A stretch of 64,000 nucleotides of DNA, taken from contig CAXIUT010000064.1 of assembly GCA_964035545.1 (NCBI GenBank), forward strand, positions 1-64,000. The letters are read 5' to 3'. Source of the DNA: Bugula neritina. Lineage: Eukaryota; Animalia; Bryozoa. Positions 1 through 64,000 of this stretch are shown piece after piece. Position 1 is the stretch's first letter; every line of letters begins with the position of its first letter. A program made the position numbers and the translations under genes. The notes under the pieces were generated by a model. That model was not told the DNA's origin, searched no databases, and was given only the letters and a program-made list of their open reading frames with translations.

Positions 1-3000
1 TATACGTTTAACTAACGTATACTTTAAGCCAAGACTATACTCATAAATTTAATTATGATATTATACGTTTAACTAACGTATACTTTAAGCCAAGAACATA
101 CTCATAAATTTAATTAATATATTATACGTTTAACTAACGTATACTTTAAGCCAAGACTATACTCATAAATTTAATTATGATATTATACGTTTAACTAACG
201 TATACTTTAAGCCAAGAACATACTCATAAATTTAATTAATATATTATACGTTTAACTAACGTATACTTTAAGCCAAGAACATACTCATAAATTTAATTAA
301 TATATTATACGTTTAACTAACGTATACTTTAAGCCAAGACTATACTCATAAATTTAATTATGATATTATACGTTTAACTAACGTATACTTTAAGCCAAGA
401 CTATACTCATAAATTTAATTATGATATTATACGTTTAACTAACGTATACTTTAAGCCAAGAACATACTCATAAATTTAATTAATATATTATACGTTTAAC
501 TAACGTATACTTTAAGCCAAGACTATACTCATAAATTTAATTATGATATTATACGTTTAACTAACGTATACTTTAAGCCAAGAACATACTCATAAATTTA
601 ATTAATATATTATACGTTTAACTAACGTATACTTTAAGCCAAGAACATACTCATAAATTTAATTAATATATTATACGTTTAACTAACGTATACTTTAAGC
701 CAAGACTATACTCATAAATTTAATTATGATATTATACGTTTAACTAACGTATACTTTAAGCCAAGACTATACTCATAAATTTAATTATGATATTATACGT
801 TTAACTAACGTATACTTTAAGCCAAGAACATACTCATAAATTTAATTAATATATTATACGTTTAACTAACGTATACTTTAAGCCAAGAACATACTCATAA
901 ATTTAATTAATATATTATACGTTTAACTAACGTATACTTTAAGCCAAGAACATACTCATAAATTTAATTAATATATTATACGTTTAACTAACGTATACTT
1001 TAAGCCAAGACTATACTCATAAATTTAATTATGATATTATACGTTTAACTAACGTATACTTTAAGCCAAGAACATACTCATAAATTTAATTAATATATTA
1101 TACGTTTAACTAACGTATACTTTAAGCCAAGAACATACTCATAAATTTAATTAATATATTATACGTTTAACTAACGTATACTTTAAGCCAAGACTATACT
1201 CATAAATTTAATTATGATATTATACGTTTAACTAACGTATACTTTAAGCCAAGAACATACTCATAAATTTAATTAATATATTATACGTTTAACTAACGTA
1301 TACTTTAAGCCAAGAACATACTCATAAATTTAATTAATATATTATACGTTTAACTAACGTATACTTTAAGCCAAGACTATACTCATAAATTTAATTATGA
1401 TATTATACGTTTAACTAACGTATACTTTAAGCCAAGACTATACTCATAAATTTAATTATGATATTATACGTTTAACTAACGTATACTTTAAGCCAAGAAC
1501 ATACTCATAAATTTAATTAATATATTATACGTTTAACTAACGTATACTTTAAGCCAAGACTATACTCATAAATTTAATTATGATATTATACGTTTAATTA
1601 ACGTATACTTTAAGCCAAGACTATACTCATAAATTTAATTATGATATTATACGTTTAACTAACGTATACTTTAAGCCAAGAACATACTCATAAATTTAAT
1701 TAATATATTATACGTTTAACTAACGTATACTTTAAGCCAAGACTATACTCATAAATTTAATTATGATATTATACGTTTAACTAACGTATACTTTAAGCCA
1801 AGAACATACTCATAAATTTAATTAATATATTATACGTTTAACTAACGTATACTTTAAGCCAAGACTATACTCATAAATTTAATTATGATATTATACGTTT
1901 AATTAACGTATACTTTAAGCCAAGACTATACTCATAAATTTAATTATGATATTATACGTTTAACTAACGTATACTTTAAGCCAAGACTATACTCATAAAT
2001 TTAATTATGATATTATACGTTTAACTAACGTATACTTTAAGCCAAGAACATACTCATAAATTTAATTAATATATTATACGTTTAACTAACGTATACTTTA
2101 AGCCAAGACTATACTCATAAATTTAATTATGATATTATACGTTTAATTAACGTATACTTTAAGCCAAGACTATACTCATAAATTTAATTATGATATTATA
2201 CGTTTAACTAACGTATACTTTAAGCCAAGAACATACTCATAAATTTAATTAATATATTATACGTTTAATTAACGTATACTTTAAGCCAAGACTATACTCA
2301 TAAATTTAATTATGATATTATACGTTTAACTAACGTATACTTTAAGCCAAGACTATACTCATAAATTTAATTAATATATTATACGTTTAACTAACGTATA
2401 CTTTAAGCCAAGAACATACTCATAAATTTAATTAATATATTATACGTTTAACTAACGTATACTTTAAGCCAAGACTATACTCATAAATTTAATTATGATA
2501 TTATACGTTTAACTAACGTATACTTTAAGCCAAGACTATACTCATAAATTTAATTATGATATTATACGTTTAACTAACGTATACTTTAAGCCAAGAACAT
2601 ACTCATAAATTTAATTAATATATTATACGTTTAACTAACGTATACTTTAAGCCAAGACTATACTCATAAATTTAATTATGATATTATACGTTTAATTAAC
2701 GTATACTTTAAGCCAAGACTATACTCATAAATTTAATTATGATATTATACGTTTAACTAACGTATACTTTAAGCCAAGAACATACTCATAAATTTAATTA
2801 ATATATTATACGTTTAATTAACGTATACTTTAAGCCAAGACTATACTCATAAATTTAATTATGATATTATACGTTTAACTAACGTATACTTTAAGCCAAG
2901 ACTATACTCATAAATTTAATTAATATATTATACGTTTAACTAACGTATACTTTAAGCCAAGAACATACTCATAAATTTAATTAATATATTATACGTTTAA

Positions 3001-5118
3001 CTAACGTATACTTTAAGCCAAGACTATACTCATAAATTTAATTATGATATTATACGTTTAACTAACGTATACTTTAAGCCAAGACTATACTCATAAATTT
3101 AATTATGATATTATACGTTTAACTAACGTATACTTTAAGCCAAGAACATACTCATAAATTTAATTAATATATTATACGTTTAACTAACGTATACTTTAAG
3201 CCAAGACTATACTCATAAATTTAATTATGATATTATACGTTTAATTAATGTATACTTTAAGCCAAGACTATACTCATAAATTTAATTATGATATTATACG
3301 TTTAACTAACGTATACTTTAAGCCAAGAACATACTCATAAATTTAATTAATATATTATACGTTTAACTAACGTATACTTTAAGCCAAGACTATACTCATA
3401 AATTTAATTATGATATTATACGTTTAACTAACGTATACTTTAAGCCAAGACTATACTCATAAATTTAATTATGATATTATACGTTTAACTAACGTATACT
3501 TTAAGCCAAGAACATACTCATAAATTTAATTAATATATTATACGTTTAACTAACGTATACTTTAAGCCAAGACTATACTCATAAATTTAATTATGATATT
3601 ATACGTTTAATTAACGTATACTTTAAGCCAAGACTATACTCATAAATTTAATTATGATATTATACGTTTAACTAACGTATACTTTAAGCCAAGAACATAC
3701 TCATAAATTTAATTAATATATTATACGTTTAACTAACGTATACTTTAAGCCAAGACTATACTCATAAATTTAATTATGATATTATACGTTTAATTAATGT
3801 ATACTTTAAGCCAAGACTATACTCATAAATTTAATTATGATATTATACGTTTAACTAACGTATACTTTAAGCCAAGAACATACTCATAAATTTAATTAAT
3901 ATATTATACGTTTAACTAACGTATACTTTAAGCCAAGACTATACTCATAAATTTAATTATGATATTATACGTTTAACTAACGTATACTTTAAGCCAAGAA
4001 CATACTCATAAATTTAATTAATATATTATACGTTTAACTAACGTATACTTTAAGCCAAGAACATACTCATAAATTTAATTAATATATTATACGTTTAACT
4101 AACGTATACTTTAAGCCAAGACTATACTCATAAATTTAATTATGATATTATACGTTTAACTAACGTATACTTTAAGCCAAGACTATACTCATAAATTTAA
4201 TTATGATATTATACGTTTAACTAACGTATACTTTAAGCCAAGACTATACTCATAAATTTAATTATGATATTATACGTTTAACTAACGTATACTTTAAGCC
4301 AAGACTATACTCATAAATTTAATTATGATATTATACGTTTAACTAACGTATACTTTAAGCCAAGAACATACTCATAAATTTAATTAATATATTATACGTT
4401 TAACTAACGTATACTTTAAGCCAAGACTATACTCATAAATTTAATTATGATATTATACGTTTAATTAACGTATACTTTAAGCCAAGACTATACTCATAAA
4501 TTTAATTATGATATTATACGTTTAACTAACGTATACTTTAAGCCAAGAACATACTCATAAATTTAATTAATATATTATACGTTTAACTAACGTATACTTT
4601 AAGCCAAGACTATACTCATAAATTTAATTATGATATTATACGTTTAACTAACGTATACTTTAAGCCAAGACTATACTCATAAATTTAATTATGATATTAT
4701 ACGTTTAACTAACGTATACTTTAAGCCAAGAACATACTCATAAATTTAATTAATATATTATACGTTTAACTAACGTATACTTTAAGCCAAGACTATACTC
4801 ATAAATTTAATTATGATATTATACGTTTAACTAACGTATACTTTAAGCCAAGAACATACTCATAAATTTAATTAATATATTATACGTTTAACTAACGTAT
4901 ACTTTAAGCCAAGACTATACTCATAAATTTAATTATGATATTATACGTTTAATTAACGTATACTTTAAGCCAAGACTATACTCATAAATTTAATTATGAT
5001 ATTATACGTTTAACTAACGTATACTTTAAGCCAAGAACATACTCATAAATTTAATTAATATATTATACGTTTAACTAACGTATACTTTAAGCCAAGAACA
5101 TACTTATTAATTTAATTA
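1..5118. repeat. Tandem array of a 61-bp unit (~84 copies), probable mitochondrial telomere; unit derived from the SSU rRNA 5' end
   Basis: Unit TTATACGTTTAACTAACGTATACTTTAAGCCAAGA(CT/AC)ATACTCATAAATTTAATTA(TG/AT)ATA with 61-nt period, running off the window start. Tandem-repeat telomeres are known in Tetrahymena mtDNA. Confidence 0.9.
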
Positions 5119-5243
5119 CCAATCTTATATATATATATATACACGATTAAGTAACGAAAAAAAAATTTAATACTTCAAAACTTATATTTTAAAATCAAAT
5201 GTTACTAGTTTACTTCCTAATTAGTTAATATAAAAAAAATTTT

Positions 5244-6096
5244 TTACTTATTTGCAATAAAAACATAAATAATTCTATCAATATCAATATAAACATAATA
5301 TGGCTCTACACCATATATATGTGAATATAATGCTTCTGGATAAAAATCTATGGCCTTTATAAATTTAAAAACTAATATATTCTTTATTTCTCAAAGTGTA
5401 AATTGATATTTATATCAAACATAGAAAAATATATCAATATTTTTAAGAATACAAATTATTACCATTGCTATTAATCCCAACAATACTGACATAAATACAT
5501 AATATAATTTGTTTTATAATGAATAACCGGGAAACACTTTATTATTTTGTGTTTTTTTAATAAACATTTTTTACATCTTCCGCAAACTATGATTACTTCG
5601 TAAATCACTTTTTGTTTCTTCTATATTTTCTTTAAGCATAATTATCAATATGTAATATGTAATAGTGTTTTTTTAGTTTATTTATCTTATTATCAATACT
5701 ATTTTTTATTTTGTTTATGTAGTCTATAAATCTGTTTTTTAATACGCTACTTTATTGTTTTAACCTACATATCTCCTCCTTAAAACTAGTTTTTAATATA
5801 TTTTTCAACTCATTAAAATCTTTTTTGTCTCATCTGTATATTTTATATAGCTATCTTTAAGTATACTACAATGCTTTTTTTAACTTATTTATATTTTTCT
5901 TAAAAATATTTTTCAGTTTACTAAAGCCTTCTTTTATCTTGTATGTAGACTTTTTAAATTTGTTATTTATATTATTTTTTAAACTATTCTTTAATATACT
6001 ATACTCTTTTCTAATTAAACTTAAAATGACTATCCAATTTTGTTTTAACACATTATAATATGTTTTTAATTTGTTTATTATTTTTAAAATATATAC
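5244..6096 (-). pseudogene. Disrupted copy of the PGYP-family ORF at 16823-17668
   Basis: Near-identical to 16823-17668, but the start GTG is changed to GTA and there are indels (e.g. near 5650-5665) and an in-frame TAG at 5866. Confidence 0.8.
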
Positions 6097-6123
6097 TTTA
6101 ACCCTTTTTATGAATGGGATGGG

Positions 6124-6194
6124 TAGGAGAAATAGGATTTGAACCTATAATAACAGTCTTAAAACTGTAGTTTTTCCCTTTAAACTATTCTCCT
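6124..6194 (-). tRNA. trnW-derived tRNA-like gene with 6-nt anticodon loop (pseudo or atypical)
   Basis: Sense AGGAGAA-TA-GTTT..AAAC-T-ACAGT-TTTAAG-ACTGT-TATT-ATAGG-TTCAAAT-CCTAT-TTCTCCT-A; all four stems pair; aligns to trnW at 44309. Confidence 0.75.
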
Positions 6195-6811
6195 TTAAAC
6201 ATACATATATATATACATATTGATAATAAAAGAATTATAATAATTGTTACAAATAAAAAATTTATTTATTACTAATAACTGCAGATTATAATAGTATTTA
6301 CTTAAAAATTAAGTTAATAATATAATTTTTAATTTAATAACTGTTTTTTCTTCTTTTTATAATATGATTTAAAAATGATAAAAACTCAGTATACCTATAG
6401 ATATAACAATTAAAATTATATAAAAAAAACCTATTTATTAGTGTTATTATGCGTATATATGTGTATATATGTATATATACGTATATTGATAATACAGTAA
6501 ACAATGATCATAGTTTTATATAGGATTTTCTTCAACTACTCAATACTAACAGTTTTTAACTTATTTATTATTTTAAAATAATATTTTTAAATTTTTTATT
6601 TAGTTTTTTTAATAATAATATATATACATATAACTGGATATAGTTATAAATATTAAAATTTTGTATAATCTTTTATTAAATTTATTTAAAGATATACTAA
6701 AATTATTGGTAAAAAAATATTAATTAATTAATTAATATTTAATAATTAATTTCTATATAATACACTTAAAATTTTCTTAATAATATAGATATAAGGTACA
6801 TTAATTATTAA

Positions 6812-7411
6812 TTACATATATTTTGCAATAAATATTATCAATTTATAAGCATACTGTATAGTAAATATTATTAAATGAACTACTAATCAAAGTAAAAATA
6901 CATAAAGATAAACTATAATCATTAATATCAGTTGATTTAGACCAGGATAACCTGGAATTAGTGTGTTCTCTGCTAATCCTGTAAGAATTTTGTTTATTAC
7001 GTATAAATATCCTCTATTCATCTTTAAATCATACTTCAATTCTTTGTGAGTTTTCTTAATCAAACCTTTTATTATAGTGTAATGTTTCTCTATAGCATCT
7101 TTACTATATCTTTTATTTAAATTATCTATACTCTCTAGAATCATACTCTTTAGTGTGATTTCAAACGGTATAACTTTAGATTTAATTGCTTTACGTTTAT
7201 ACTTGTATAAAATATATTGTTTATAGCGTCGTCAAAGTCTCTTTAATTTACCTTTACTGCGCTCTTTTTTTAAGTTTTTTTTACGATTTATACGTGCAAT
7301 TATTACTAATATTGGATCTGGTTTAGATCTAGGCTTTCTTCCTTTACGTTTACGTCTAAAGTAAAGTCGTTCTCATTTATCTAGGAGTTTAATAAAATTT
7401 TTTTTAGTCAT
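6812..7411 (-). CDS. Orphan PGYP-family protein (199 aa; basic N-terminus, C-terminal hydrophobic segment)
   Basis: ATG 7411 to TAA 6812, open with TGA=Trp; contains ENTLIPGYPGLNQL followed by a TM-like stretch. Confidence 0.7.
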
Positions 7412-7759
7412 TTATTTAGTTAGTTATCTAATAAATTAATAAGTATACAACAGTTATTTAGGTGTATTCATATGTGTGTATATTTAGATACGTAATTGTA
7501 ACTTTTAAAGTTTTAAATATTTTTATTAATATAGCTATTACCAGTTATATATATATATTGTCATTATATATATATATAACTATTTACTACTAAACAATTT
7601 ATAAATAAGTTATTGCTATTTAATTTAATAATATAATTTGAAAAAGAAATGTTAAGTATTTTTTTTATTATAAAATATAATTTAAATAATTAAAAAAAAT
7701 AAGTTATATATATAAGTATGTATATATGTGTATGTATACTCGTATACTAATTTTTTTTT

Positions 7760-8290
7760 TATTTTTCTGTTTATTATAACTAATAAAATATTAAGTTATA
7801 GCATATTTTTACTCGTAAAAAAAAAAAAAATTATTTAATAGAATTTTTTTTTTACTTTTCTGTTATTATATATAATAAAACATTAAGTTATAACATATTT
7901 TTACTTGTAAAAAAAAAAAATTATTTAGTAGAAATTTTTTTTTTCTGTTTATTATATATAATAAAACATTAAGTTACAACATATTTTTACTTGTAAAAAA
8001 AAAAAATTATTTAATAGAATTTTTTTTTTCTGTTTATTATATATAATAAAACATTAAGTTATATTATATTTTTACTCGTAAAAAAAAAAAAATTATTTAG
8101 TAGAAATTTTTTTTTTTCTGTTTATTATATATAATAAAACATTAAGTTATAACATATTTTTACTTGTAAAAAAAAAAATTATTTAGTAGAATTTTTTTTT
8201 TCTGTTTATTATATATAATAAAACATTAAGTTATATCATATTTTTACTTGTAAAAAAAAAAATTATTTAGTAGAAATTTTTTTATTTTTT
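7760..8290. repeat. Tandem ~85-90 bp A/T-tract repeat (family also at 20.5 kb and 56.3-57.2 kb)
   Basis: About 6 copies of CTGTTTATTATA..TAATAAAACATTAAGTTATAACATATTTTTACTTGT(A)nTTATTTAGTAGAA(T)n. Confidence 0.85.
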
Positions 8291-8640
8291 TTATTTCTAA
8301 ATAAATGAAGTACTTGTATACTGTATATTTACTAATATAAGTATAAATACATCTATATTGATACTTATAAATATACTTATATATATATCTATTTATTAAT
8401 TATTAAATAGATTTGTATAAGAAATTTATAGCTTTAATTTATTATAAAATTGTTTAAAAGCCGATAGATATGGTATTTATATGGGATTTGTGTAAAAAAA
8501 TTATACCTTTAATTTATTATAAAATTATTTAAAATTCAATAAACAAATAATTGTCGGCATTACCTTATCTCATAATATAAAGATATATCTATAACTTGTA
8601 TATGTAATTTTAATTATTTTTTTATAATAAATAAATAATC

Positions 8641-8720
8641 TGAGATAAGATAGAATCGAACTACCACCGACAACGTCATTTGATTTACAGTCAAACGCAT
8701 ACCCACTCTGCTTTTATCTC
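8641..8720 (-). tRNA. trnY: tRNA-Tyr(GUA) with long variable arm
   Basis: GAGATAA/TTATCTC acceptor, TTTGA-CTGTAAA-TCAAA anticodon arm, GTTCGATTC T-loop. Confidence 0.93.
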
Positions 8721-8776
8721 CTAATTTTAGTATATATATATTGATAGATCTATGCATATTTGTCTATACACTATAG

Positions 8777-9262
8777 TTAAAAACTATGCAATATAGAGTT
8801 AACTTGTGAAATTTTTCCAAATCTTTTTATAAAAGGATCTTTTTTAAACCTTATACCTCTCCTGGTATACTTATTATATGTTCTTATACTGTTAAAAATT
8901 TTTTTTATTAAGAAAAAGTTTTCTCTTTTACTAAAAATTACAGTATAGTTTTGTCTTCTTATTCTAGAAAAATAAAAAATATTACTATTATATAATATTT
9001 TATATCAATGAGAATGGCCAAAATTAAATGTAAATTTTGATTTTTTTTTAAATAACCTAACTCTATAGGCTTTACCTCTCCATACAATCCTTAAATAATA
9101 CAGTATAAAGGTATAAATATATATATATTCTATTAAACTTTTATACTTTTTTTTATAAAAAATATGTTTTTCATTACTTGGTAAATAGATTAAAATATTA
9201 TTTATTTTTTTTAATTTTATAATATCATTAAAGGGGGTAATAAAGTTAATAGTTTTTAACAT
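8777..9262 (-). CDS. rpl6: Ribosomal protein L6 (ymf60)
   Basis: RGKAYRV...FNFGHSHW...YNKYTRRGIRF motifs after TGA read-through; TAA at 8777. Confidence 0.88.
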
Positions 9263-9389
9263 TTATAAAAAATCCTCAAAAAAATATAATAAATACTTGA
9301 ATACTAAAAAAAAAATTTTTATTAAATGTATATAACATAAGTAAATAAATCATTATTAGCAGATGTACTATAACTATATTAGTTATAGA

Positions 9390-9578
9390 TCATATATAAT
9401 ACAGTAATAATAGCGTTTTAAAGATTATAAAAAAAACAATTACATTACAACTATTTAATGCACTATAAATATATGTATATAAATTGAATTTTTTTATATT
9501 AAAGTGACTATAAGATATAACAGTATACCTTAATATATAAATATAATTTATTAATTTAAAGTTTGTTTTTCCTATCAC
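9390..9578 (-). CDS. Small hydrophobic orphan ORF, possibly related to the ORF at 15595-15804 (3' end uncertain)
   Basis: GTG start, shares TVIS motif and overall layout with the 15.6-15.8 kb ORF; ends at TGA, so it may extend further. Confidence 0.35.
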   Translation of the reverse strand: MIGKTNFKLINYIYILRYTVISYSHFNIKKFNLYTYIYSALNSCNVIVFFIIFKTLLLLYYI

Positions 9579-10071
9579 TTTATATAATTTAAATAATTAA
9601 AAATAAGTTATAGTTTTAAAAGTATTCAATTTAATTGTATATATATATATATATATATAGATAAATAAAACTATAAATTACTATATTATAGTAAAACATC
9701 AACATTATACAGATTATATAGTTTATTATAAATACGTATATTAACATTAATAAGCAGTGATAATAAAATTTTGCTGTTTCTTAAATTATATTAATATGTT
9801 AAAAATATAAAATAATTAATTTACTAAATTTTTGAAATATTTATTTTTTTTTATAATTTTTAACCACATGTAAGTATGTATGCGTATATTAAAAAAAAAA
9901 AAAAATAAATTAATAATATTTAAGTTATTATATCAACAAAAAAATTTTACTAATTTATTAAAGTGTAAATATAACATAGTTTTTATATACGTTTAAATAT
10001 GGTATAAAAAAATTAATAAAAAGAGAAAGAAAATTTAATATTAAAAATTAAAAACTTATTAATACTCTTAT

Positions 10072-10653
10072 TTAAAATCACCATCCAAATATTTGTCAAA
10101 AAATAGAGCTCTTTATTTTTTCTTCTAATTTCCTCTTATCTTTCTCAAATTCAGTTGGGAAAAGATAAATACTTAAACATACTGAATATATATATGTTAT
10201 AAGAAACATAAACAATATTACTAATAATAGTAAAAACAGATTCATAAGTCAAAATAACATTCGACTTAATAGTGGATAGCCAATAAAGATTTCTCCTGTT
10301 TCTATTTTTCTAACAATTTTTCTTCGTATATCTCTTAAACTTCAATCATTATTTCAATCATCCACTAATTCTAAAATAAAATTTTTCAACATACCACCCA
10401 ATATATGTTTATGTCTCTTTAGTTTATTTATGTCTTTTTTAAGAACATCTTTTAATAAACTAAGATCCCTTTCTGTTTCATTTACATATTTTAAAAGTTT
10501 ATCTTCTAACTTATCATCTCATCTTTTATGTTTTTTTTTTATAATAGATTGACGGGAAAGTCTTTGGGGTTTATTTATAAAGCTATTAAAATGAGTTTTC
10601 ACTCATCTATAAAATCTAAATACTATTTTAATAAATTTTGTTATTAATTTCAT
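10072..10653 (-). CDS. Orphan PGYP-family protein (193 aa)
   Basis: ATG 10653 to TAA 10072; MKLITKFIKIVFRFYRWVK...EDKLLKY...GEIFIGYPLLSRMLFW plus TM segment; clear paralogue of the 1.25-kb repeat ORF. Confidence 0.75.
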
Positions 10654-11347
10654 TTATATATTATAAACATACACATAAACTATATATACTTATGTATATA
10701 CATATACATTAAAATTATAAAACTATAAGCACGGTATTTAAGTTTACTATTTTAGGAGATATAGCAGCATTAACTAATTTATGAACATAAAATTTTAATA
10801 TATTCAACATAATTCTTATCACTTCATATTAAAAAAATTAAAATTAAAAAGTAAATTATATTTGTATGTGTATGTTATATTTACTATATTTATTAAAAAT
10901 CATAATATAATTATTTTTTATATAATATAGTTAAAAATTAATACGCTTATGAACACTGTTATTAAAACTATATAGAATTACGTCTATTTATGTCAATACA
11001 TATATATATATATATATGTATTAATAGTGTAATTAATAAACTAGTTATAGTTTTATATAAAGTTCTTATTAATCTATTTATTACTTTAAAATAATATTTT
11101 TTTAATTTTTACTAAATTATTTTAGCATATAATGTCTAAGTATAGTTATGAAAACGAAATTTTTTGTGTCAATGTTATTAAACTTATTTAAAAAATATAG
11201 TATAATTATTAATAGTAGTAAAAAATCTAACGTTAAATGATTAAAGGTGTATTAATATTTTTATTTAAAACTAATTTTCAAAAAAAGGATTTTATTTTTT
11301 TTTTATATATATTTTCTGTTTTATAGCAGATACTATACAATTTTCTA

Positions 11348-11839
11348 TTAAAAAAACTTATCATAAAAGATTGATAATAGTCACAGAATGTTTCTAGTAA
11401 TTTTTGCAAAAACTCATGGTGCATAAAACAATCATCATAATATTAACATTATTATCAATATTCTCGTTAATAACTGTATAAATTTCGCAAATCAATATAA
11501 TATCTGACTTAATATAGGATAACCGGGAAATACTTCATAATTCTCTATTTTTTTAAAGATTTTTTCCCACGTATCTATTCAGTTTCATCTACTATATAAA
11601 TTGCATTTTATTTCTCAAATAAACTTCCGCCACATACTCCCCATAATAGACTTATGTTTATCTATTTCAGTTATATACGCTAAGAGTTTTTCCTCTAATA
11701 TGTCCTCCTCTGTTTTGTCCTTTTTTTTAAGTACACGGACAGAACTTCCAATAAAATTATTATCAGGTTTATTAAATAAAGATTTTACTCATCTATAAAA
11801 CCTAAATACTAGTTTAATTAAATTTTTTATTATAGCCAC
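11348..11839 (-). CDS. Orphan PGYP-family protein, repeat copy 1 (163 aa)
   Basis: GTG to TAA, open with TGA=Trp: MAIIKNLIKLVFRFYRWVK...ENYEVFPGYPILSQILYW...LWWLFYAPW. Confidence 0.75.
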
Positions 11840-12243
11840 TTAACAAATTATAAATATATATTAAAATTCTATAAACTTTTATATAAATCATATTTTTATA
11901 CATGTATATGTATATATATTAAAATTTTACATATTATTAATAATATAATTATTGTAAATACACAGGGAAAGTTATTTAAATTTATTATTTTAAGAAATAT
12001 AAAGCTATTGATTAATTTATAACTGTTAATTTTTAATATATTAAATTTTTTTACTATCAGTTAATATTAAAAAAAAAAACTAAAATTCAAAAGTAAGTTG
12101 TAGTTATATATATATATATATAACACCTTTATTGTATTTATTAAAAATCATAATATAATTATTTTTTATATAATATAGTTAAAAATTAATACGCTTATGA
12201 ACACTGTTATTAAAACTATATAGAATTACGTCTATTTATGTCA

Positions 12244-12279
<36 letters not shown>

Positions 12280-15804: not shown

Positions 15805-15881
15805 TTAATATAAAAAAAAACTAAAATTAAAAAGTAAATTATAGCTGTATACAGTTTAATATGTATATATATATATAGACA

Positions 15882-16640
15882 CATTAAAATAGCTAATTTT
15901 AGTTTTAATATATACCCAATCTTACCCATAAAACGTAAACCTAAAAAATTTTTAAATTATTAAATATATATATATATAATTAATAACTTAATTAGCATTA
16001 GTTTATTATCTTTTTATATAAATAGTTTTTAGAAATTTTATAAAAAAAATTTCATTTAAAATCACTTTAAAAATTAAAATTTTATAAACGTTATTATATC
16101 TAATAAATAGAGTAAATATTAAAAAATTTTTTATAATAATTAACAAAAATAAATACAAAAAATTTAATAACATTTACCTAAGACAACAATTAGATAAAGA
16201 TATTAATTTATATTTTATTTATTTGTCTCCATAAAGTAGCATACGTATATTAGTATTACTGTTAATACCGTACTGATATACAGATTAGTTCAAAATTAAT
16301 TAATACAATTAAAATACTATTATTAAATGCAGTAAAATTAATATTAAGAATAAATCTTTTGTCTGTATACCTCCCTTAACATAGTTAAATTTACCAATAC
16401 TTATAACACGAATATACACATAACTTTCATGTGTACATTTTCTACATTAAAAATTTTTTAAATCTATTAAAAGTATTTAACTTTAAGAATCCTATTTTAC
16501 TAAACTTACTCACCATGACGCTATTTTATTTATTTTTTAAATTTTTAATTTAAAAAATAATTTCATTCAACTTGCATGTGTTATACATTTAACTAACGTT
16601 CACTCTAAGCTAAGACCACACTCATAACTTTAATTAAGAT
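15882..16640 (-). pseudogene. Duplicated 5' part of SSU rRNA gene (rns pseudogene)
   Basis: Colinear, highly similar copy of ~55297-56157, including CAACTTGCATGTGTTATAC; truncated at its 3' side. Confidence 0.9.
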
Positions 16641-16822
16641 ATTATACGTTTAACTAGTGTTCACTCTAAGCCAAGACCGCACTCATAATTTTAATTACTA
16701 ATCTTATATATGTATATATACGATTAAGTAACGGGGGAAATTTTTAATACTTCAAAACTTATATTTTAAAATCAAATGTTACTAGTTTACTTCCTAATTA
16801 GTTAATATAAAAAAAAAATTTT

Positions 16823-17668
16823 TTACTTACTTGCAAGAAAAACATTAATAATTCAATCAATATCAATATAAACATAATAAGGCTCTACACCATATATATG
16901 TGGATATAACGCTTCTGGATAAAAAGCTATGGCCTTTATAAATTTAAAAACTAATATATTCTTTATTTCTACAAGTGTAAATTGACATTTATATCAAACA
17001 TAGAAAAATATACCAATATCTTCAAGAATACGCATTATTACCACTGCTATTAATCCCAACAATACTGACACAAATACATAGTATAATTTGTTTAATAATG
17101 GATAACCAGGAAACACTTTATTATCTTCTGTTTTTTTAATAAATATTTTTCACGTCTTCCGCAAACTACGATTACTTCGTAAATCACTTTTTGTTTCTTC
17201 TATATTTTTTTTAAGCATAATGATCAATATGTAATAATGTTCTTTTAATTTATTTATCTTATTATCAATACTATTTTTTATTTTGTTTATGTAGTCTATA
17301 AATCGGTTTTTTAATACGCTACTTTGTTGTTTTAACCTATATATCTCCTGCTTAAGACTAGTCTTTAATATATTTTTCAACTCGTTTAAATCTTTTTTTG
17401 TCTCATCTGTATATTTTATATAACTATCTTTAAGTATACTACAATGTTTTTTTAACTTATTTATCTTTTTCTTAAAAATATTCTTCAGTTTACTAAAGCC
17501 TTCTTTTATCTTGTTTGTAGACTTTTTAAACTTGTTATTTATATTACTTTTAAAACTATTCTGTAATATACTATACTCTTTTCTAATTAAACTTAAAATT
17601 CGTATACAATTTTGTTTTAACATATTATAATATGTTTTTAATTTATTTATTATTTTAAAAATATACAC
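16823..17668 (-). CDS. Orphan PGYP-family protein (281 aa) with repetitive coiled-coil-like N-half
   Basis: GTG 17668 to TAA 16823; recurring INKLK..SILK motifs, then EDNKVFPGYPLLNKL plus TM segment. Confidence 0.75.
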
Positions 17669-17695
17669 TTTAACCCTTTTTATGAATGGGATAGG

Positions 17696-17766
17696 TAGGA
17701 GAAATAGGATTTGAACCTATAATAACAGTCTTAAAACTGTAGTTTTTCCCTTTAAACTATTCTCCC
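17696..17766 (-). tRNA. Second trnW-derived tRNA-like gene with 6-nt anticodon loop
   Basis: Same as 6124-6194 except the first base (G:U pair). Confidence 0.75.
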
Positions 17767-18717: not shown

Positions 18718-20076
18718 TTATTTTTTTTTATACTTTTTGTATATGTAATTATCTTTAAAAATTAATAATATATTTTATTTAGTAGTAGACAACTAAAAAA
18801 TATTTTTTTTTATAGTTTCTATAAGCTACTATTGTTATATTAATTATTTTTTACTTTTGTTTTTAATACTTTCTTAAAATTTACTTATTAGTATATAATA
18901 GTGTTTTTTTTTAGTTTATTTATTTTTTGACTAATAACACTCTTTATTATACTTTTTAATTTACTAAATTCTCTTTACTTCGTTTATAATTTATAAACTT
19001 ATCTCTTAATATACTGTTTTAATTTTTTACAGTATTTATCACTTTTTCAGTGACGCTCTTTAAAATATCTTAGTTTATTAAGATCTCTTTTTATTTTATT
19101 TGTATACTATATAGTATAAATTCGTTTGTTAATGTATTAACATAATCCTTTAATTTACCTATATTTTTATAAGTTTATTAATTAATATCTAGTTAAATGT
19201 ATAATACATTAATTAAAATTATAAGTGTGGTCTCGGTCTAGAGTGAACACTAGTTAAATGTATTAATTAATACCTTTTTATTTTTTAAGTAAGTTTATAG
19301 TTCTTATATTACTTTACATTTAGTATATCATAATAACTTTTTAATTTATTTATTATTTTTAAAAAGTTTTTTAATTTAATCAGTAAGTATAAGTATATAA
19401 ATATGTATGCATATACTTATAATTATAAGTTTTAAATTTTTTATTGTCTATATTTAGATAATTATCCTTGATTACGTTATAATTAATAAAAAAGTTATCT
19501 TATGTTAAGCGATTAAGAAAATAAAATAAATCTATTTAATTTAAGGTAAGGTTTTTATTTTACTGCTGTTAAATTTAACTTAAAATATAATAGAGTTTGG
19601 TATAATTATCTAATAATAACGTTAAAAAATTTAATATTAGATAATTAAAAATATATTAATATTTTTTATTTAAATTTAATCAAAAAATTAAATATATTAG
19701 TTTGTCTGTTTATATATATATTATAGTTTAAAATCTATTCAAATTTTCTCACGGTACTTCATTAAGAGTTGAGTCTTTTGTACTAAGTACATGAAGTTTA
19801 TCTGTGTGTGTACGTGTATATGCATATGTATATATATATATTTAAAGAATTAAGATTAAAAAAAAAAATTTAAACTATAATAAATAAACACAATATAAAT
19901 ATATATATTAAAATTTTTAATACTGAATAAATAGGGAATATATTAGTGTATTTTAACGTATTAAAGTAACTGACGATTTTAAAAAGAAATTTTTTAGCCA
20001 TTTATTTTTTTTTTAATTATATTAACAGTTAAATGAATAAATATAAATAAATATATGTGTGTATATGTGTGTATGT

Positions 20077-44308: not shown

Positions 44309-44379
44309 CGAGAAAAACAGGATTCGAACCTATAATGACAGTTTTGAAGACTGTAGTTTTTCCATTAAACTATTCTCTC
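44309..44379 (-). tRNA. trnW: tRNA-Trp(UCA)
   Basis: ACAGT-CTTCAAA-ACTGT anticodon arm; consistent with TGA=Trp. Confidence 0.96.
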
Positions 44380-51399: not shown

Positions 51400-54050
51400 T
51401 CAGCTAAATTAAGTAAAATTTATTATACTTCTATACAATTATTACTAATCTTATAAAGTATTTATTTTTATTAAAAATATTCTGTTTTTTACTTATTAAA
51501 AAAAAAAATTACTTAAATTCCCCATATTGGTTATATAATTAGGCGTAACTGATCAACATGCAATTTTTATACAATTGATTATAATTGGCCTATCGTCTCC
51601 GGTCCTCTCGTACTGAGATAATTATAATTTTTTTTTTTATTACGTACAGTAGATAGGGACCAAACTGTCTCACAACGTTTTGAACCCAGCTCACGTACCA
51701 TTTTATTTGACGAACAGTCAAACCCTTGGCAGCGTATGCTCCGCCAGGATATGATGAGCCGACATCGAGGTGCCAAACGATTTCTTCAATAGGAGCTCTC
51801 AAAAATCATTAGCCTGTTATCCCTAGCGTACCTTTTATTCGTTGATCGATTTTTTTAGCAATATAAAAAATCGGTTCAATATGACAGAGTTACCTCCTTA
51901 TATTACTAGTTAGTAATATAATCAGACTTATTTTGATCATTCATCTTTTTCTATATAATATATAGACTAAATCTTGTATTCACCTCCGTTACTTTTTAGG
52001 AGGTTGCCGCCCCAGCTAAACTGTCTTTCTAACAAAAAATAATACCATACAATTATTTTTAACTAACATATATAAAAAGTAGTTTTCCATTATTAAAAAA
52101 TTTACTACATATCTATATTTTATATACATTTAATTAATTATTAGATAACAGTAAAGGTGCATAGGGTCTCTCCGTCTAGCTGTACATTAACGCATCTTCA
52201 CGTTTAATTCAATTTCATAAAGTTAGTATTAGAGACAGTAGGGCAGTCGTTACACCATTCGTGCAGGACGGAACTTACCCGTCAAGGGATTTTGCTACCT
52301 TAGGACCGTTAGGATTACGGCCGCCGTTTATTGGGGCTTATACATAAACAGGATGTTTATGTTTTTTACCTTGCAACACTGGGCAGGTGTCAGACTTTAT
52401 ACTTCATAACTATACTTAGCAAAGTCTTATGTTTTTGTTAAACAGTCGCTACCCTCATTTATTATAACTATTTAGTTCTTTTTCTCCCGAAGTTACAAAG
52501 ATAATTTGCAGAGTTCCTTTAATACTATTATCTTTTATACCTTAGCTTACTCAGCTTATTAACTTGTGTTAGTATTAGTACAGTTTTTATTTTACAATTT
52601 TTTCTATATATTAAATTTATATGAATATATATATATATATATATACTTTAATATTTAATATAGTTTTTATAAAATTCATCACTTTTTTTTTTTTAAAAAA
52701 GTTTAGATACTGTATTACATGTAATAAATTTATTTTAATTACATAACCCTATAATATTAGGTATATATGTTTATACATATAATTATTACTCATATTAGCA
52801 TAATTAATCTTTATATTTCCAATTTTTTTTACAAAAAATCTTCTACAATATAAAAGACACTCCACTACCTAATGTGTAATTTCAATAAATAGTTTTTTAA
52901 CATTAATTTTAGAAAATTAAATATATGTTTATTAATTATATACAAAAAAAATATTTGATCTTTTACGATTTCTTAAAAGAATGGCTGATTCTAAGCCTAT
53001 CTCTATATTTAATATTTAGTAATTTTCTTAATATTAACTATTTTTTATTATTTTAATTTACACTCTGGGCTGTTTCCCTCTCGACATTTAATCTTTGCAC
53101 TAAATGTCTGTTTAAATATAAATATAGATACTAATTTATAAATTAATTTTCATTATCTCATTACCAAATATCTATATAATATTCACTTTACTTAAATAAA
53201 TTTCGTGGAGAACCAGCTATAACTAAGCTTGATAAGCCTTTCACCCCTAATAACAAATCATCTCAAAATTTTGCAACATTTACGAGTTCAGCCTAATGCT
53301 TGTTCATTATTAGATCGCTTAGTTTCGGGTCAAATACTATAAACTAAATTATTTTCACTATGCTTACGCTTGCTTATAGTATTTACTTGCTAATCCATTA
53401 TACAAAAGGTACAATAAAACATTCGCTTTATTTGATTTAATACATTAAAATTCAGTATTACTCATATTAATATGTTATTTCATCTATTTTTCGCAAAATA
53501 TAATCTATAAAACTTAAGTTTTTTAGCAGTTAATTTACTAAATTTTTATAGTTATATAGATTAATAAGTAAACTTAATAGGTATTAAAAATTTTAAAAAA
53601 TTTAAAATACACTAAAATATTAATATTACTTACTTAAATTTAATAGATTTAATTTTACTTAAATATATATATACAAAATTTAAATAAGTATATGATATTG
53701 TTTAATATATTAATACTATATACTTTTAAATCAATCTTAAAGATCTACTTTTTTACAAGACTTTCACTTTCTATGGTTTATTTTTTTCAAAATAATTATT
53801 AAAATTTTTTATTTTCTGCTAACTATTTTCGATCATCTCTACAATAGTTCTCAATTGAATTTTATAATTATATACTAAAATATTTTTCTTCTACAATATA
53901 ATCCTATTATTATTCATTAAAGACCAGGTCGTAATAATGATATATTCTTTATAAGAAAAATCTTTTACTCCATAGTTTTTAAATTATTCCTAATAATATA
54001 ACTTAAGTTTTAGACATCCTTCTAATGTAATTTTTTTAGCTAATTAATTC
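51400..54050 (-). rRNA. rnl: Large subunit rRNA (boundaries approximate)
   Basis: PTC motifs (GATGAGCCGACATCGAGGTGCCAAAC on +), GAGAACCAGCTATAACT, and 5'-domain-like AGACATCCTTC near 54015. Confidence 0.93.
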
Positions 54051-54071
54051 AATAAAAATATAAACTATATA

Positions 54072-56157
54072 AAAAATTTAATTTACCTACAGATTCATCT
54101 ACCAGTACCTTGTGTCAACTTAATTCAAATAACCTTTAAACTAATCAAACTTTTTTTTTTTTTTTATCATAGTGACACTTAAAAATCTATTTATTTCATT
54201 GCAAGAAAAAAAAAAAGGTAAGCGTCTTTATTAATCTAAAAACGCTCCGAATGTGATGGGCGGTGTGTGCAAAACTATTGTATTAATTCGCCATAACATC
54301 GTTATTTATGGTTACTAACGATTTCAACTTCTTCACTTCTGTTTCAGAAATGATTCTGCACTTTGATAATTTTTTAAACTGTCTCTAAATTACTTTTTTG
54401 AATTTTTTTGTTTTTATCATTGTAATACGTGTGTAGCCCAATATACTTAGATCGTGAGGACTTGACTTCAATTTACTTTAAAAATACACTTTCATAGAGT
54501 TTGTATATCAATAACTAGTAAGATTACGTTCGTTATATAAACTTAATTATACACGTCAAAGCACGAACTGACGACAGCCATGCAGTACTATTTAAATATT
54601 AATTTAATTTTAATTTATTTAATTTATTATTATTACATATTGGTAAGATTTTACGTGGATTATCGCATTAAACCACATATTCCACCGTTCGATATAATTC
54701 CCGCCAATTCTGTTAGCTTTGAGATTTGCAACTGTACTCACCAGGTAGATTATTTTAACGTAAATTTTAATAATAATCAACATTCAGGGTAGAGATTACT
54801 AGGGTCTCTAATCCTATTCATTTCCTCTACTTTCGTGTTTTAGCGTCAGATAAAACCGGTAAAATTCATTAGAATAATGGCAAAATTATTTAAATAATAG
54901 CGTATTTTATCACTCTTTAAATAAGTTTTTTTACTTTTGTTTAATCTCAAAAATATTTTATATTACACATAATTTCAATTTATAAATCTAGTAGTATGTA
55001 TAATTTTATTTAGCCCACACACCTTTTACACCCAATCATGCTGAATAACGCTTGTTGCTCAGGTCTTACCGCGGCTGCTGGCACCTGTATTTGCCACAAC
55101 TTCTTTTTATGTTTAATATCATAATTTTTACATTTGGATAAACTTTACAACTTCTATAGTTTTCGTCGTTTCCGTTAAATTGATAGGTCATACTTTCGTA
55201 CATTGCCTAATATTCTTCACTGCTGCCGTATGGTGGGGTTGTTTTCATACCCCATGTGGATGATTCTTCTCTCAAATCAACTAAAGATTATAGGCATATT
55301 AAAACAGCTAATTTTAGTTTTAATATATACCTAATCTTACCCCATAAAACGTAAACCTAAAAATTTTTTAAATTATTAAGTATTTAAATATATATATACA
55401 ATTATATATATATATATATATACAATTAATAACTTAATTAGCATTAGTTTATTATTTTTTTATATAAATAGTTTTTAGAAATTTTATAAAAAAAAATTTT
55501 ATTTAAAATCACTTTAAAAATTAAAATTTTATAAAAATAATTTTACCTAAAATTACTTTAAAAAATTAAAATTTTATAAACTTTATTATATCTAATAAAT
55601 AAAGTAAAATAATAAAAAAATTTTTTATAATAATTAACAAAAATAAATACAAAAAATTTAATAACATTTTCCTAAGACAACAATTAAATAAAAATATTGG
55701 TTTATATTTTATTTATTTGCCTCCATAAAGTGGCATACGTATATTGGTATCGTTGTTAATACCGTACCAATATACAGATTAATTCAAAATTAATTAATAA
55801 TTTATTTTTCAAAAAAATTAATTAATACAATTAAAATACTATTGTTAATGTAGTAAATTTAATATTAAGAATAAATCTTTTGTCTGTATACCCCCTTAAC
55901 ATAGTTAAATTTACTAATACTTATAACACGAATATACACACAACTTTCATGTGTACATTTTCTACGTTAAAAATTTTTTAAATCTATTAAAAGTATTTAA
56001 CTTTCAGAATCCTATTTTACTAAGCTTACTCACCACGACGCTATTTTATTTATTTTTTAAATTTTTAATTTAAAAAATAATCCCATTCAACTTGCATGTG
56101 TTATACATTTAACTAGCGTTCACTCTAAGCCAAGATCACACTCATAAATTTAATTAC
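54072..56157 (-). rRNA. rns: Small subunit rRNA including a ~0.6 kb AT-rich insertion/spacer (boundaries approximate)
   Basis: 27F-like ATGAGTGTGATCTTGGCTTAG, ACACATGCAAG, GTGCCAGCAGCCGCGGTAA, GCACACACCGCCC and 1492-like motifs. Confidence 0.95.
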
Positions 56158-59540: not shown

Positions 59541-60289
59541 AAAAATTGAAGTATAAATTCGTATAAAATAATATTAATTTGGTCTTATTTTTAATAATTA
59601 AATATTAAATTTTATATTAATATATATGGGTATATGTATAAGTTTTACAATTGTATAAGTGTATAAAGTATATATTAAATTTTTTTTAAGTATATTATTA
59701 AGATATGTTGATTGTAAGAGTATTAGATATATTAAATATAGAAAAATTAAAAATTTGATAATTGTCGTAATTTATTAATTTATATGGGTTATATGTTTTT
59801 ACGTAGGTATAAGTCTGTTAGTATGTATATACATATTTATATTAGGCATTATAATGGTATATGTGTTTAGTATATATATAAAAGTGTATTTTTATAAGAT
59901 TGGTTATGTAATTATATCGATGCATATTTGATAAACTAATTGTATTTAGAAAAGGATAAAAAGCGTAATATATGTATATATATATATATAATTGGTTAAT
60001 TGATGTGGTTATAAGTAATTTATTTAGTAGTAAAGTGATTGATTGATAATTATAGATATAAGTATGGGTATATATTTACGTACACAGATAAATTTTTTTA
60101 TGAATAAATATATTTGAAATAATGGTGATATGGCTATTCTTAATTGTAATTTTTTCATATTTTATAATTAAAGTTGAAGTTATGGTATTAATATAAATAT
60201 ATTTATTTGAGCGTTAACTATACTAATTTTAAATATTTTTTTTTAATTATTATTATAAATTTTTTTATATAAAATTTATTTAAATACTT

Positions 60290-63200
60290 TATTTATCAAA
60301 TTTTAAAGATTTTTTATAATAAAATAAAGCTGTAAATTTCTTACACAAAACTTACTTAATTACCTTATTTATCAAATTTTAAATATTTTTTATAATAAAT
60401 TAAAGTTATAAATTTCTTACATAAAATCTACTTGAATAACTTATCTATCAAATTTTAAATATTTTTATAATAAATTAAAGTTATAAATTTCTTACATAAA
60501 ACCTACTTGAATAACTTATCTATCAAATTTTAAATACCTTTTTATAATAAATTAAAGTTATAAATTTCTTACATAAAACCTATTTGAATAACTTATCTAT
60601 CAAATTTTAAATATTTTTTATAATAAATTAAAGCTGTAAATTTCTTACATAAAACCTACTTGAATAACTTATCTATCAAATTTTAAATATTTTTATAATA
60701 AATTAAAGTTATAAATTTCTTACATAAAACCTACTTAAATAACTTATCTATCAAATTTTAAATATTTTTTATAATAAATTAAAGCTGTAAATTTCTTACA
60801 TAAAACCTACTTGAATAACTTATCTATCAAATTTTAAATATTTTTATAATAAATTAAAGTTATAAATTTCTTATATAAAACCTACTTAATTACCTTATCT
60901 ATCAAATTTTAAATACCTTTTTATAATAAATTAAAGTTATAAATTTCTTATATAAAACCTACTTAATTACCTTATCTATCAAATTTTAAATACCTTTTTA
61001 TAATAAATTAAAGTTATAAATTTCTTACATAAAACCTACTTAAATAACTTATCTATCAAATTTTAAATACCTTTTTATAATAAATTAAAGCTGTAAATTT
61101 CTTACATAAAACCTACTTGAATAATTTATTTATATAAGATTTGTATAAGAAATTTATAACTTTAATTTATTATATAAAACCTACTTAATTACCTTATCTA
61201 TCAAATTTTAAATACCTTTTTATAATAAATTAAAGCTGTAAATTTCTTACATAAAACCTACTTGAATAATTTATTTATATAAGATTTGTATAAGAAATTT
61301 ATAACTTTAATTTATTATAAAAAGGTATTTAAAATTTGATAGATAAGTTATTTAAGTAGGTTTTATGTAAGAAATTTATAACTTTAATTTATTATAAAAA
61401 ATATTTAAAATTTGATAGATAAGGTAATTAAGTAGGTTTTATATAAGAAATTTATAACTTTAATTTATTATAAAAAGGTATTTAAAATTTGATAGATAAG
61501 TTATTTAAGTAAGTTTTATGTAAGAAATTTATAACTTTAATTTATTATAAAAAGGTATTTAAAATTTGATAGATAAGGTAATTAAGTAGGTTTTATGTAA
61601 GAAATTTATAACTTTAATTTATTATAAAAATATTTAAAATTTGATAGATAAGTTATTTAAGTAAATTTCTTATATAAAACCTACTTAATTACCTTATCTA
61701 TCAAATTTTAAATATTTTTATAATAAATTAAAGTTATAAATTTCTTATATAAAACCTACTTGAATAACTTATCTATCAAATTTTAAATACCTTTTTATAA
61801 TAAATTAAAGTTATAAATTTCTTATATAAAACCTACTTAATTACCTTATCTATCAAATTTTAAATACCTTTTTATAATAAATTAAAGTTATAAATTTCTT
61901 ACATAAAACCTATTTGAATAACTTATCTATCAAATTTTAAATACCTTTTTATAATAAATTAAAGCTGTAAATTTCTTACATAAAACCTACTTAATTACCT
62001 TATCTATCAAATTTTAAATACCTTTTTATAATAAATTAAAGTTATAAATTTCTTATATAAAACCTACTTAATTACCTTATCTATCAAATTTTAAATATTT
62101 TTTATAATAAATTAAAGTTATAAATTTCTTACATAAAACCTATTTGAATAACTTATCTATCAAATTTTAATACCTTTTTATAATAAATTAAAGCTGTAAA
62201 TTTCTTACATAAAACCTACTTAATTACCTTATCTATCAAATTTTAAATACCTTTTTATAATAAATTAAAGTTATAAATTTCTTACATAAAACCTACTTAA
62301 ATAACTTATCTATCAAATTTTAAATACCTTTTTATAATAAATTAAAGTTATAAATTTCTTATACAAATCTTATATAAATAAATTATTCAAGTAGGTTTTA
62401 TGTAAGAAATTTATAACTTTAATTTATTATAAAAAATATTTAAAATTTGATAGATAAGGTAATTAAGTAGGTTTTATATAAGAAATTTATAACTTTAATT
62501 TATTATAAAAAGGTATTTAAAATTTGATAGATAAGTTATTTAAGTAAGTTTTATGTAAGAAATTTATAACTTTAATTTATTATAAAAAGTTATTATTGTT
62601 ATTTAAAATTTGATAGATAAGGTAATTAAGTAGGTTTTATGTAAGAAATTTATAACTTTAATTTATTATAAAAATATTTAAAATTTGATAGATAAGTTAT
62701 TTAAGTAAATTTCTTATATAAAACCTACTTAATTACCTTATCTATCAAATTTTAAATATTTTTATAATAAATTAAAGTTATAAATTTCTTATATAAAACC
62801 TACTTAAATAACTTATCTATCAAATTTTAAATATTTTTTATAATAAATTAAAGCTGTAAATTTCTTACATAAAACCTACTTAATTACCTTATCTATCAAA
62901 TTTTAAATACCTTTTTATAATAAATTAAAGTTATAAATTTCTTATATAAAACCTACTTAATTACCTTATCTATCAAATTTTAAATATTTTTTATAATAAA
63001 TTAAAGCTGTAAATTTCTTACATAAAACCTACTTGAATAATTTATTTATATAAGATTTGTATAAGAAATTTATAACTTTAATTTATTATAAAAAGGTATT
63101 TAAAATTTGATAGATAAGTTATTTAAGTAGGTTTTATGTAAGAAATTTATAACTTTAATTTATTATAAAAAATATTTAAAATTTGATAGATAAGGTAATT

Positions 63201-64000
63201 AAGTAGGTTTTATATAAGAAATTTATAACTTTAATTTATTATAAAAAGGTATTTAAAATTTGATAGATAAGGTAATTAAGTAGGTTTTATGTAAGAAATT
63301 TACAGCTTTAATTTATTATAAAAAATATTTAAAATTTGATAGATAAGGTAATTAAGTAGGTTTTATATAAGAAATTTATAACTTTAATTTATTATAAAAA
63401 GGTATTTAAAATTTGATAGATAAGTTATTTAAGTAAGTTTTATGTAAGAAATTTATAACTTTAATTTATTATAAAAAGGTATTTAAAATTTGATAGATAA
63501 GGTAATTAAGTAGGTTTTATGTAAGAAATTTATAACTTTAATTTATTATAAAAATATTTAAAATTTGATAGATAAGTTATTTAAGTAAATTTCTTATATA
63601 AAACCTACTTAATTACCTTATCTATCAAATTTTAAATATTTTTATAATAAATTAAAGTTATAAATTTCTTATATAAAACCTACTTAAATAACTTATCTAT
63701 CAAATTTTAAATATTTTTTATAATAAATTAAAGCTGTAAATTTCTTACATAAAACCTACTTAATTACCTTATCTATCAAATTTTAAATACCTTTTTATAA
63801 TAAATTAAAGTTATAAATTTCTTATATAAAACCTACTTAATTACCTTATCTATCAAATTTTAAATATTTTTTATAATAAATTAAAGCTGTAAATTTCTTA
63901 CATAAAACCTACTTAATTACCTTATCTATCAAATTTTAAATACCTTTTTATAATAAATTAAAGTTATAAATTTCTTATATAAAACCTACTTAATTACCTT
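60290..64000. repeat. ~75-77 bp tandem array with repeated orientation inversions; probable second terminus
   Basis: Unit TTATCTATCAAATTTTAAATA(CC)TTTTTATAATAAATTAAAG(T/C)T(A/G)TAAATTTCTTA(C/T)ATAAAACCTACTT..; inverted blocks at ~61280-61665, 62385-62705 and 63050-63587. Confidence 0.9.

Follow-up and report, generated by a model that had tools for sequence, protein, structure and literature searches.

INTRODUCTION

Ciliate mitochondrial telomeres described so far are tandem repeats with species-specific units of 18-142 bp, whose origin is unknown and for which import from plasmids has been proposed. The repeats differ wholly even between sister species, and where they come from has been an open question from the 1980s onward; explanations usually invoke the import of a plasmid or mobile element, or the amplification of an arbitrary sequence by unequal crossing-over. 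We analysed the first 64 kb (positions 1 to 64,000; hereafter the window) of contig CAXIUT010000064.1 (C73; 70,610 bp) from assembly GCA_964035545.1, filed under the bryozoan Bugula neritina. The contig begins inside an array of head-to-tail 61-bp units, a length within the described range, and sequence comparison makes it almost certain that these units originated from the 5′ end of rns_a, the first piece of a split mitochondrial small-subunit (SSU) rRNA gene.

In Tetrahymena, as summarized from Morin and Cech (1986, 1988) in PMC3341644 and PMC7961746, the mitochondrial telomeres consist of 31-53-bp tandem repeats, and unequal crossing-over, which homogenizes the repeats, is thought to maintain them. 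The array on C73 resembles those telomeres, as portrayed in the same summaries, in being a species-specific tandem unit at what would be the end of a linear ciliate mitochondrial DNA (mtDNA), with no similarity between species (PMC3341644, PMC7961746). It differs in its 61-bp length, in occupying one end only and in that its source (the 5′ end of rns_a) and intermediates can be identified. Some Tetrahymena species carry different repeats at the two ends; possession of the same array at both ends is not universal. Colpoda mitochondrial telomeres have units of 32-142 bp in arrays of up to 8.75 kb (PMC10878089). Here the likeness lies in the long units, the multi-kilobase arrays obtained with long reads, the lack of homology between species and ~10 kb of unexplained subtelomere; the Colpoda arrays are found at both ends and are of unknown origin, whereas that on C73 is at one end and has an rRNA gene origin (PMC10878089).

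RESULTS

A 61-bp tandem array and its rRNA source

Tandem Repeats Finder (TRF), run on the 64-kb window, returned positions 1-5118 as a single array with a period of 61, 83.9 copies, 95% matches and no indels. Each unit can be divided into a 5-nt junction, 8 nt of 5′ leader and a stretch that aligns to positions 1-51 of the Rfam bacterial SSU rRNA consensus (RF00177); it carries approximately the first 48 nt of rns_a, with the 27F primer site included. The array reads in the rRNA sense on the minus strand, which runs 5′ to 3′ toward position 1, the contig end.

The original prediction, made from the letters of the window, had aligned a 56-nt variant of the unit, which occurs exactly 34 times in the array, to positions 56101-56156. 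We reproduced this ungapped match at 49 of 56 positions, and found further matches within the window at 16581 (48/56) and 16642 (47/56). As a null, 1000 dinucleotide-preserving shuffles of the unit were compared without gaps to both strands of the remaining 58.9 kb. The best match of a shuffled unit averaged 34.3 positions with a maximum of 39, and chance is therefore excluded as the source of the observed 49. Two directional claims were also borne out by the annotation: the unit has the same orientation as rns, the rRNA genes and the array sense strand both being on the minus strand, and all transcription runs toward the array, since all rRNAs, six tRNAs and every gene identified by Pfam are on the minus strand.

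The prediction had further taken 56101-56156 to be the start of rns with its 27F region, and here too we agree. RF00177 consensus positions 1-62 align over their full length to the minus strand, starting at 56148 and reading downward, and this is the top-scoring site for the SSU 5′ consensus on either strand of the window. In overlapping metagenome contigs of one relative (L018 and L019), ~60 nt at the start of rns_a are 100% identical to those in the window, with different sequence on both flanks. The rns_a piece in these contigs precedes the main SSU piece by a few hundred bases, as it does in the window, where it is just upstream of rns_b. Because of the consensus alignment, and the identity with the relative despite differing flanks, 56101-56156 is, as judged from these comparisons, the true 5′ end of the SSU rRNA and under purifying selection.

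In the same relative (metagenome Ga0302321), the identical rns_a start occurs in two contexts, at 173-298 of L018 and 2022-2147 of L019: one heads an rns_a-rns_b-rnl series and the other follows rnl and an open reading frame (ORF). Duplication of rns_a, or a looped rRNA unit, may recur in this lineage. Tandem repeats of ~86 bp with 77-91% identity were noted in the window at 7748-8305, 20527-20950 and 56216-57245, the last just upstream of rns_a.

The array units are gene fragments, not genes. They end at about SSU consensus position 51 and have not retained conserved rRNA bases: there are 7-8 substitutions per 56 nt, at positions that are invariant between the working rns_a and that of the relative. 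Compared with every internal copy, the array units have 7-9 fixed substitutions. These changes, together with a variant structure of the array's own, also bear on the suggestion that the similarity is a chance one, or that the array was artefactually assembled from reads of the 16-kb and 56-kb loci. Such an explanation has almost no credibility: it has nothing to draw on beyond the low complexity of AT-rich DNA, and must account both for the 49/56 match against a best shuffle of 39/56 and for the presence of the array junction region in 8 sequencing runs from 3 studies (Logan contigs).

Outside the contig, the 61-bp unit had 0 matches when contigs of bacterial and archaeal genomes were scanned, and a scan of metagenome contigs recovered the rns_a genes of one relative only, and no arrays.

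Variant structure of the array

The array contains variants A (35 units), B (34), C (9), D (2) and E (2). Variants A and B differ at four positions and are interspersed along the array, and variant D has some positions of the A type and others of the B type. Only units 27-82 include variants C, D and E, the outer 26 units being A and B only. The first unit is partial and A-type, and the last (innermost) is the most diverged. Autocorrelation of the variant labels gave peaks at 3, 6 and 9 units, and one 9-unit block is exactly duplicated within the array. This combination of variants and higher-order pattern is the usual mark of repeated unequal exchange.

A paralog of rns_a with two units

Self-comparison showed that 15874-16636 is an 84-89% identical copy of 55289-56156, so that rns_a and its spacer are present twice. 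Measured against the relative, lineage-specific changes number 13 in the 16-kb rns_a and 5 in the 56-kb copy, from which we conclude that the former is a less constrained paralog. Its 5′ end is present as two tandem 61-bp units, and TATAA is found at both edges of the duplicated 61-bp segment, which fits slippage or unequal exchange at short homology. The array units share a derived C->T with unit 1 of this pair and a T->C with unit 2; variant A alone has an A->G in common with both.

The similarity to the 16-kb locus continues beyond the array. Positions 5002-6483 and 16581-18060 are 91% identical over 1492 bp; the part inward of the array (5119-6483 versus 16703-18060) is likewise 91% identical and has the leader, ORF and trnW-like tRNA in common. 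At 16826-17716 the ORF (ORF297) is intact, with 297 codons under genetic code 4, and the copy beside the array has decayed through +1, -1 and +7 indels and several stops. We found no ORF297 homologs among 5.8 billion proteins, and an exact look-up of the subtelomeric ORF gave no match. Terminal growth by segmental duplication is also seen in Oxytricha trifallax (~1.45 kb at ~91% there; 1.49 kb at 91% here), as are many orphan subterminal ORFs (PMC3318907). The two differ in that the 35-bp telomere unit of Oxytricha has no known source, and that a telomere-bearing linear plasmid is present there and none with the 61-bp unit here (PMC3318907); our search for such a plasmid covered the 216-Mb assembly.

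The trnW-like tRNAs at 6122-6194 and 17694-17766 (minus strand) are duplicates of one another with an abnormal anticodon loop (ARAGORN 'tRNA-???'). The former is 85% identical to trnW(UCA) at 44309-44379. Both are likely to be pseudo-tRNAs derived from trnW, or else processing signals.

Searching the whole contig with a profile turned up just one further copy of the unit, at 19187-19264 on the opposite strand. It is in the old state, closest to unit 2 of the 16-kb pair, and is not followed by rRNA sequence. Judged by its sequence, it resembles an interstitial fragment of the array as it was at an early stage.

The order of events can be read in two directions. We favour a paralog at 16 kb that acquired its second unit before the amplification at the end. 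In the opposite order, the terminal rns_a copy would have been truncated and amplified first, and the 16.6-kb units and 19.2-kb relic written later from the array, by gene conversion or by insertion into homologous or other internal sites. We consider this unlikely, though it is the strongest of the alternatives. The unit-junction-unit structure at 19.2 kb with no rRNA after it implies that array-type sequence has moved inward, the array units mix states of unit 1 with states of unit 2, and the terminal copy of ORF297 could simply be the older one. However, the two 16.6-kb units are continuous with a full rns_a paralog, and the internal units are nearer to the working gene and without the substitutions that create a hairpin in the array (see below). 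Any transfer from the array would therefore have to predate most of its evolution. The ultimate rRNA origin is the same in either order.

We also considered an integrated linear plasmid with 61-bp terminal repeats, comprising either 16.58-19.26 kb or a whole ~10.8-kb insertion (see below). Two features count against it: the left-hand units run into a complete rns_a paralog, and there is no relic at the left edge of the insertion.

Position of the array in the chromosome

The genes identified on the minus strand are rps12, nad10, nad1, nad5-like, rpl14, rpl2, nad3, cox2 and atp9. Using environmental relatives recruited through rps12, among them the source of an rps12 protein (P0001) at 93% identity, we found a common gene order: rpl14 ... 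atp9 ... rps12, nad10, rpl2 ... nad7, ORF147, ORF92 and an rpl6-like ORF. The conserved gene block stops before the array, where the contigs of relatives also end. In several relatives the rpl6-like ORF is at or near the contig end; in L024 it is the last gene and is followed by a terminal 10-bp repeat, and a 51-bp repeat closes a further contig among the relatives. The 61-bp unit is similar to neither of these repeats. Contigs L022 and L033 run out in unique sequence and are uninformative on this point. The rpl6-like ORF is followed by cob in L034/L035 and is thus not terminal in every relative.

ORF92 (20080-20355) and the rpl6-like ORF are adjacent in 3 of the 3 relatives with both called (L024, L033 and L034/L035), and ~10.8 kb apart in the window. 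The lineage-specific insertion between them (~9300-20080) contains the rns_a paralog, ORF297, a 1.25-kb tandem array and, near its right edge, the relic. In this tandem array (10735-15851) a ~1.25-kb unit is present four times, the copies being 91-96% identical and each containing an ORF of 163 codons. ORF193 (10075-10653), ORF199 (6815-7411) and ORF297 share an '(I/P)GYP..L' motif followed by a hydrophobic tail, and form an orphan subtelomeric family. The region distal to the rpl6-like ORF and trnY is repeat-rich with many orphan ORFs, as expected for a subtelomere. In a more distant relative (L031/L032, 13197-20411), rpl2 is followed by a single ORF of 2893 residues, unusually large for a ciliate mitochondrial gene.

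Such repeats matter to the possibility that the 61-bp array is an internal satellite or an assembly break, with a chromosome that continues beyond position 1 or is circular or concatemeric. In favour of this possibility, terminality is read from a contig start that falls within the array, and the window has other large arrays that are internal (1.25 kb x4, 86 bp and 77 bp). Nonetheless, we regard an internal array as improbable. An array-specific 22-mer, searched for in the whole 216-Mb assembly, gave 84 matches, all in one orientation and all at C73:1-5118; there were 0 in reverse orientation, and the array motif is joined to nothing else. All other mitochondrial genes sought, cox2 and atp9 among them, are on C73. 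The gene block ends before the array as in the contigs of relatives, one of which ends in a short repeat. Moreover, the long reads that presumably lie behind a 70-kb contig with a 10-kb repeat end would usually span a 5-kb array. A telomere role for the array, as read from the assembly, is likely.

The opposite end of the contig carries ~10 kb of 77-bp repeats, whose orientation flips every 2-12 units. Within them, contig positions 64770-70610 form a palindrome of 5846 bp, with 99.6% self-identity and its centre near 67690. Such a palindrome could mark a hairpin end or a head-to-head dimer junction, but an assembly artefact could produce it too. The 77-bp unit recurs as two copies near the array end, at 8365-8536.

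Paramecium mtDNA has a hairpin initiation end, an open telomeric end and a single direction of transcription. C73 likewise has asymmetric ends (fold-back AT-rich repeats versus a tandem array) and genes on one strand directed toward the array. It differs in size (70.6 kb versus 40-44 kb), the 61-bp unit has no similarity to the GCCCTGGTGG-type Paramecium core, and the covalent hairpin, unlike that of Paramecium, is suggested here by the 5.8-kb palindrome in the assembly. We also asked whether the unit or rns_a is homologous to the published telomere units of Paramecium and Tetrahymena, and rejected this: there was a single 8-mer match (p about 0.04, uncorrected, 16 tests), and local alignments of the unit to the Paramecium and Tetrahymena telomere cores were no better than those of shuffles. 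Taken as a whole, C73 is probably a ciliate-type linear mitochondrial chromosome with a Paramecium-like layout.

The ciliate may have been sequenced alongside another organism. Two other organelle-type contigs are present in the assembly: C214 (65,006 bp), with an SSU at 543 bits followed by a tRNA cluster, and C321 (15,248 bp), which has 29% GC and a cox2 with TGA codons. A near-copy of the C321 cox2 is on a chromosome-scale contig (C6:11186024-11186377) and is NUMT-like, i.e. resembles a nuclear mitochondrial insertion.

Table 1. Coordinates of the features of the window discussed in the text
Feature	Positions	Strand	Remarks
Terminal tandem array	1..5118	-	84 units x 61 bp, head-to-tail (TRF)
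Subtelomeric duplicate block	5119..6483	-	TA-rich rns_a-type leader, frameshifted ORF297 pseudo-copy, trnW-like tRNA 6122-6194
rpl6-like ORF161 (8780-9262) and trnY	8641..9262	-	
rns_a paralog remainder and downstream spacer	15874..16580	-	84-89% identical to 55289-56100
Tandem pair of 61-bp units at the 5′ end of the rns_a paralog	16581..16702	-	Preserved intermediate
Intact ORF297 and trnW-like tRNA	16826..17766	-	Counterpart of the decayed subtelomeric block
Putative inverted interstitial relic	19187..19264	+	~1.3 units: unit tail, 5-nt junction, full unit
LSU (large-subunit) rRNA	51402..53455	-	
rns_b, main SSU rRNA piece	54071..55346	-	
rns_a, 5′ piece of split SSU rRNA	55730..56156	-	Mature 5′ end predicted near 56148; 3′ limit approximate
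Start of the opposite-end repeat region	60225..64000	.	77-bp units flipping orientation; continues to contig position 70610

A hairpin gained in the array units

Every array unit (e.g. 61-121) contains a hairpin with a perfect 8-bp stem and a 5-nt loop, TATACGTT-TAACT-AACGTATA, that is absent from all rns_a copies. Four of the 7 substitutions that separate the unit from rns_a each mend one mismatch of an imperfect inverted repeat. Folded as DNA, the unit hairpin has a free energy of -5.2 to -7.3 kcal/mol, compared with -0.1 to -1.1 kcal/mol for all internal and rns_a copies, and only 0.8% of random 7-substitution mutants fold as well. Quasi-palindrome correction is a known mutational bias, and the gain of the hairpin may reflect this or selection alike.

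The original prediction had also raised the idea that read-through transcripts of the array might be cut into ~61-nt mimics of the rRNA 5′ end, here considered as RNAs with a function of their own. The direction of transcription of all genes would allow it, each unit keeps 8 nt of leader and the rRNA start, and a stable hairpin has been gained with a chance probability of about 0.008. Nevertheless, we think it very unlikely: the units have mutations at bases that SSU rRNA conserves, the hairpin is equally explained by a function at the DNA level or by quasi-palindrome correction, and none of the 8 runs that match the stretch is recorded as RNA. We give equally little credence to the more general proposal that the array goes beyond passive padding of the end, either through phased ~61-nt RNAs or through DNA hairpins that recruit a protein of the rRNA- or ribosome-assembly type. 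Were either true, the maintenance of a mitochondrial telomere would be tied to the rRNA-processing machinery.

DISCUSSION

The likely history of C73 has four steps. Firstly, rns_a and its spacer would have been duplicated into the 16-kb region. Secondly, the first 61 bp of this paralog would have been tandemly duplicated, using the short TATAA homology at both edges. Thirdly, a block consisting of the trnW-like gene, ORF297, leader and units would have come to the chromosome end. Fourthly, the units would have been amplified to at least 84 copies. The array would then be kept and homogenized without telomerase, via unequal crossing-over or gene conversion, as proposed for Tetrahymena; under such concerted evolution the unit would have lost its rRNA-conserved bases and gained its perfect 8-bp hairpin. 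The resulting chromosome would have a fold-back end of AT-rich 77-bp repeats from which all genes are transcribed away, and an open end capped and protected by the 61-bp array. We hold this full explanation, i.e. the layout, the history and the maintenance together, with reasonable confidence.

Several observations weigh against it. Terminality is read entirely from the assembly, and contigs can stop in internal repeats too. The array is at one end only, unlike those of Tetrahymena, Oxytricha and most spirotrich mitochondrial genomes. The case for recombination-based maintenance comes solely from the pattern within the array. A single duplication is too simple a history, given the relic at 19.2 kb and the 10.8-kb insertion. 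Finally, when the isolated rns_a pieces were submitted to Rfam (cmscan), they returned chance miRNA matches only, and with a larger stretch the Rfam SSU model forced the 5′ domain onto the spacer beside rns_b; the assignment of rns_a was made by alignment to the printed SSU consensus instead of by Rfam model scoring. A miss by cmscan would be expected for an isolated fragment whose helices pair with rns_b.

The original prediction had an rRNA gene fragment co-opted and amplified as a telomere. The origin stands, on the two-unit intermediate, the 1.4-kb flank and the conserved source. What must be revised is the route, which is not directly from the working rns but through, or by exchange with, the duplicated and less constrained rns_a paralog at 16 kb. 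The telomere role gains support from the assembly (the contig start, the uniqueness of the motif, the gene direction and the ends of relatives); that the array is the physical terminus we infer from these.

Our reading of the literature, in which coverage was incomplete, also found no tandem telomere array made from a fragment of an rRNA gene, in agreement with the earlier claim that none had been described. That claim needs qualifying, as rRNA fragments in subtelomeric inverted repeats are known: fragments of genes or rRNAs occur in the subtelomeres or terminal inverted repeats of Alatina, Hydra, Theileria (pieces of rnl) and Tetrahymena (PMC3268669, Table 1). C73 is like those linear mtDNAs in that pieces of resident genes reach the termini by recombination or gene conversion (PMC3268669). 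There, the fragments adjoin the telomere or sit in single-copy inverted repeats, whereas here the fragment itself is the amplified array. We think it probable that the array belongs to the known type of tandem-repeat mitochondrial telomere and that what is new is a traceable genic origin.

One molecule here keeps a series consisting of a working gene, a paralog with two units, a relic of the old type and an 84-unit array with concerted substitutions. This series directly supports the view that a telomere repeat can be born when resident sequence is tandemly duplicated. It also provides a natural system in which to follow the rate at which an array homogenizes and diverges, and the hairpin that the unit acquired hints at features for which the end-maintenance machinery may be selecting.

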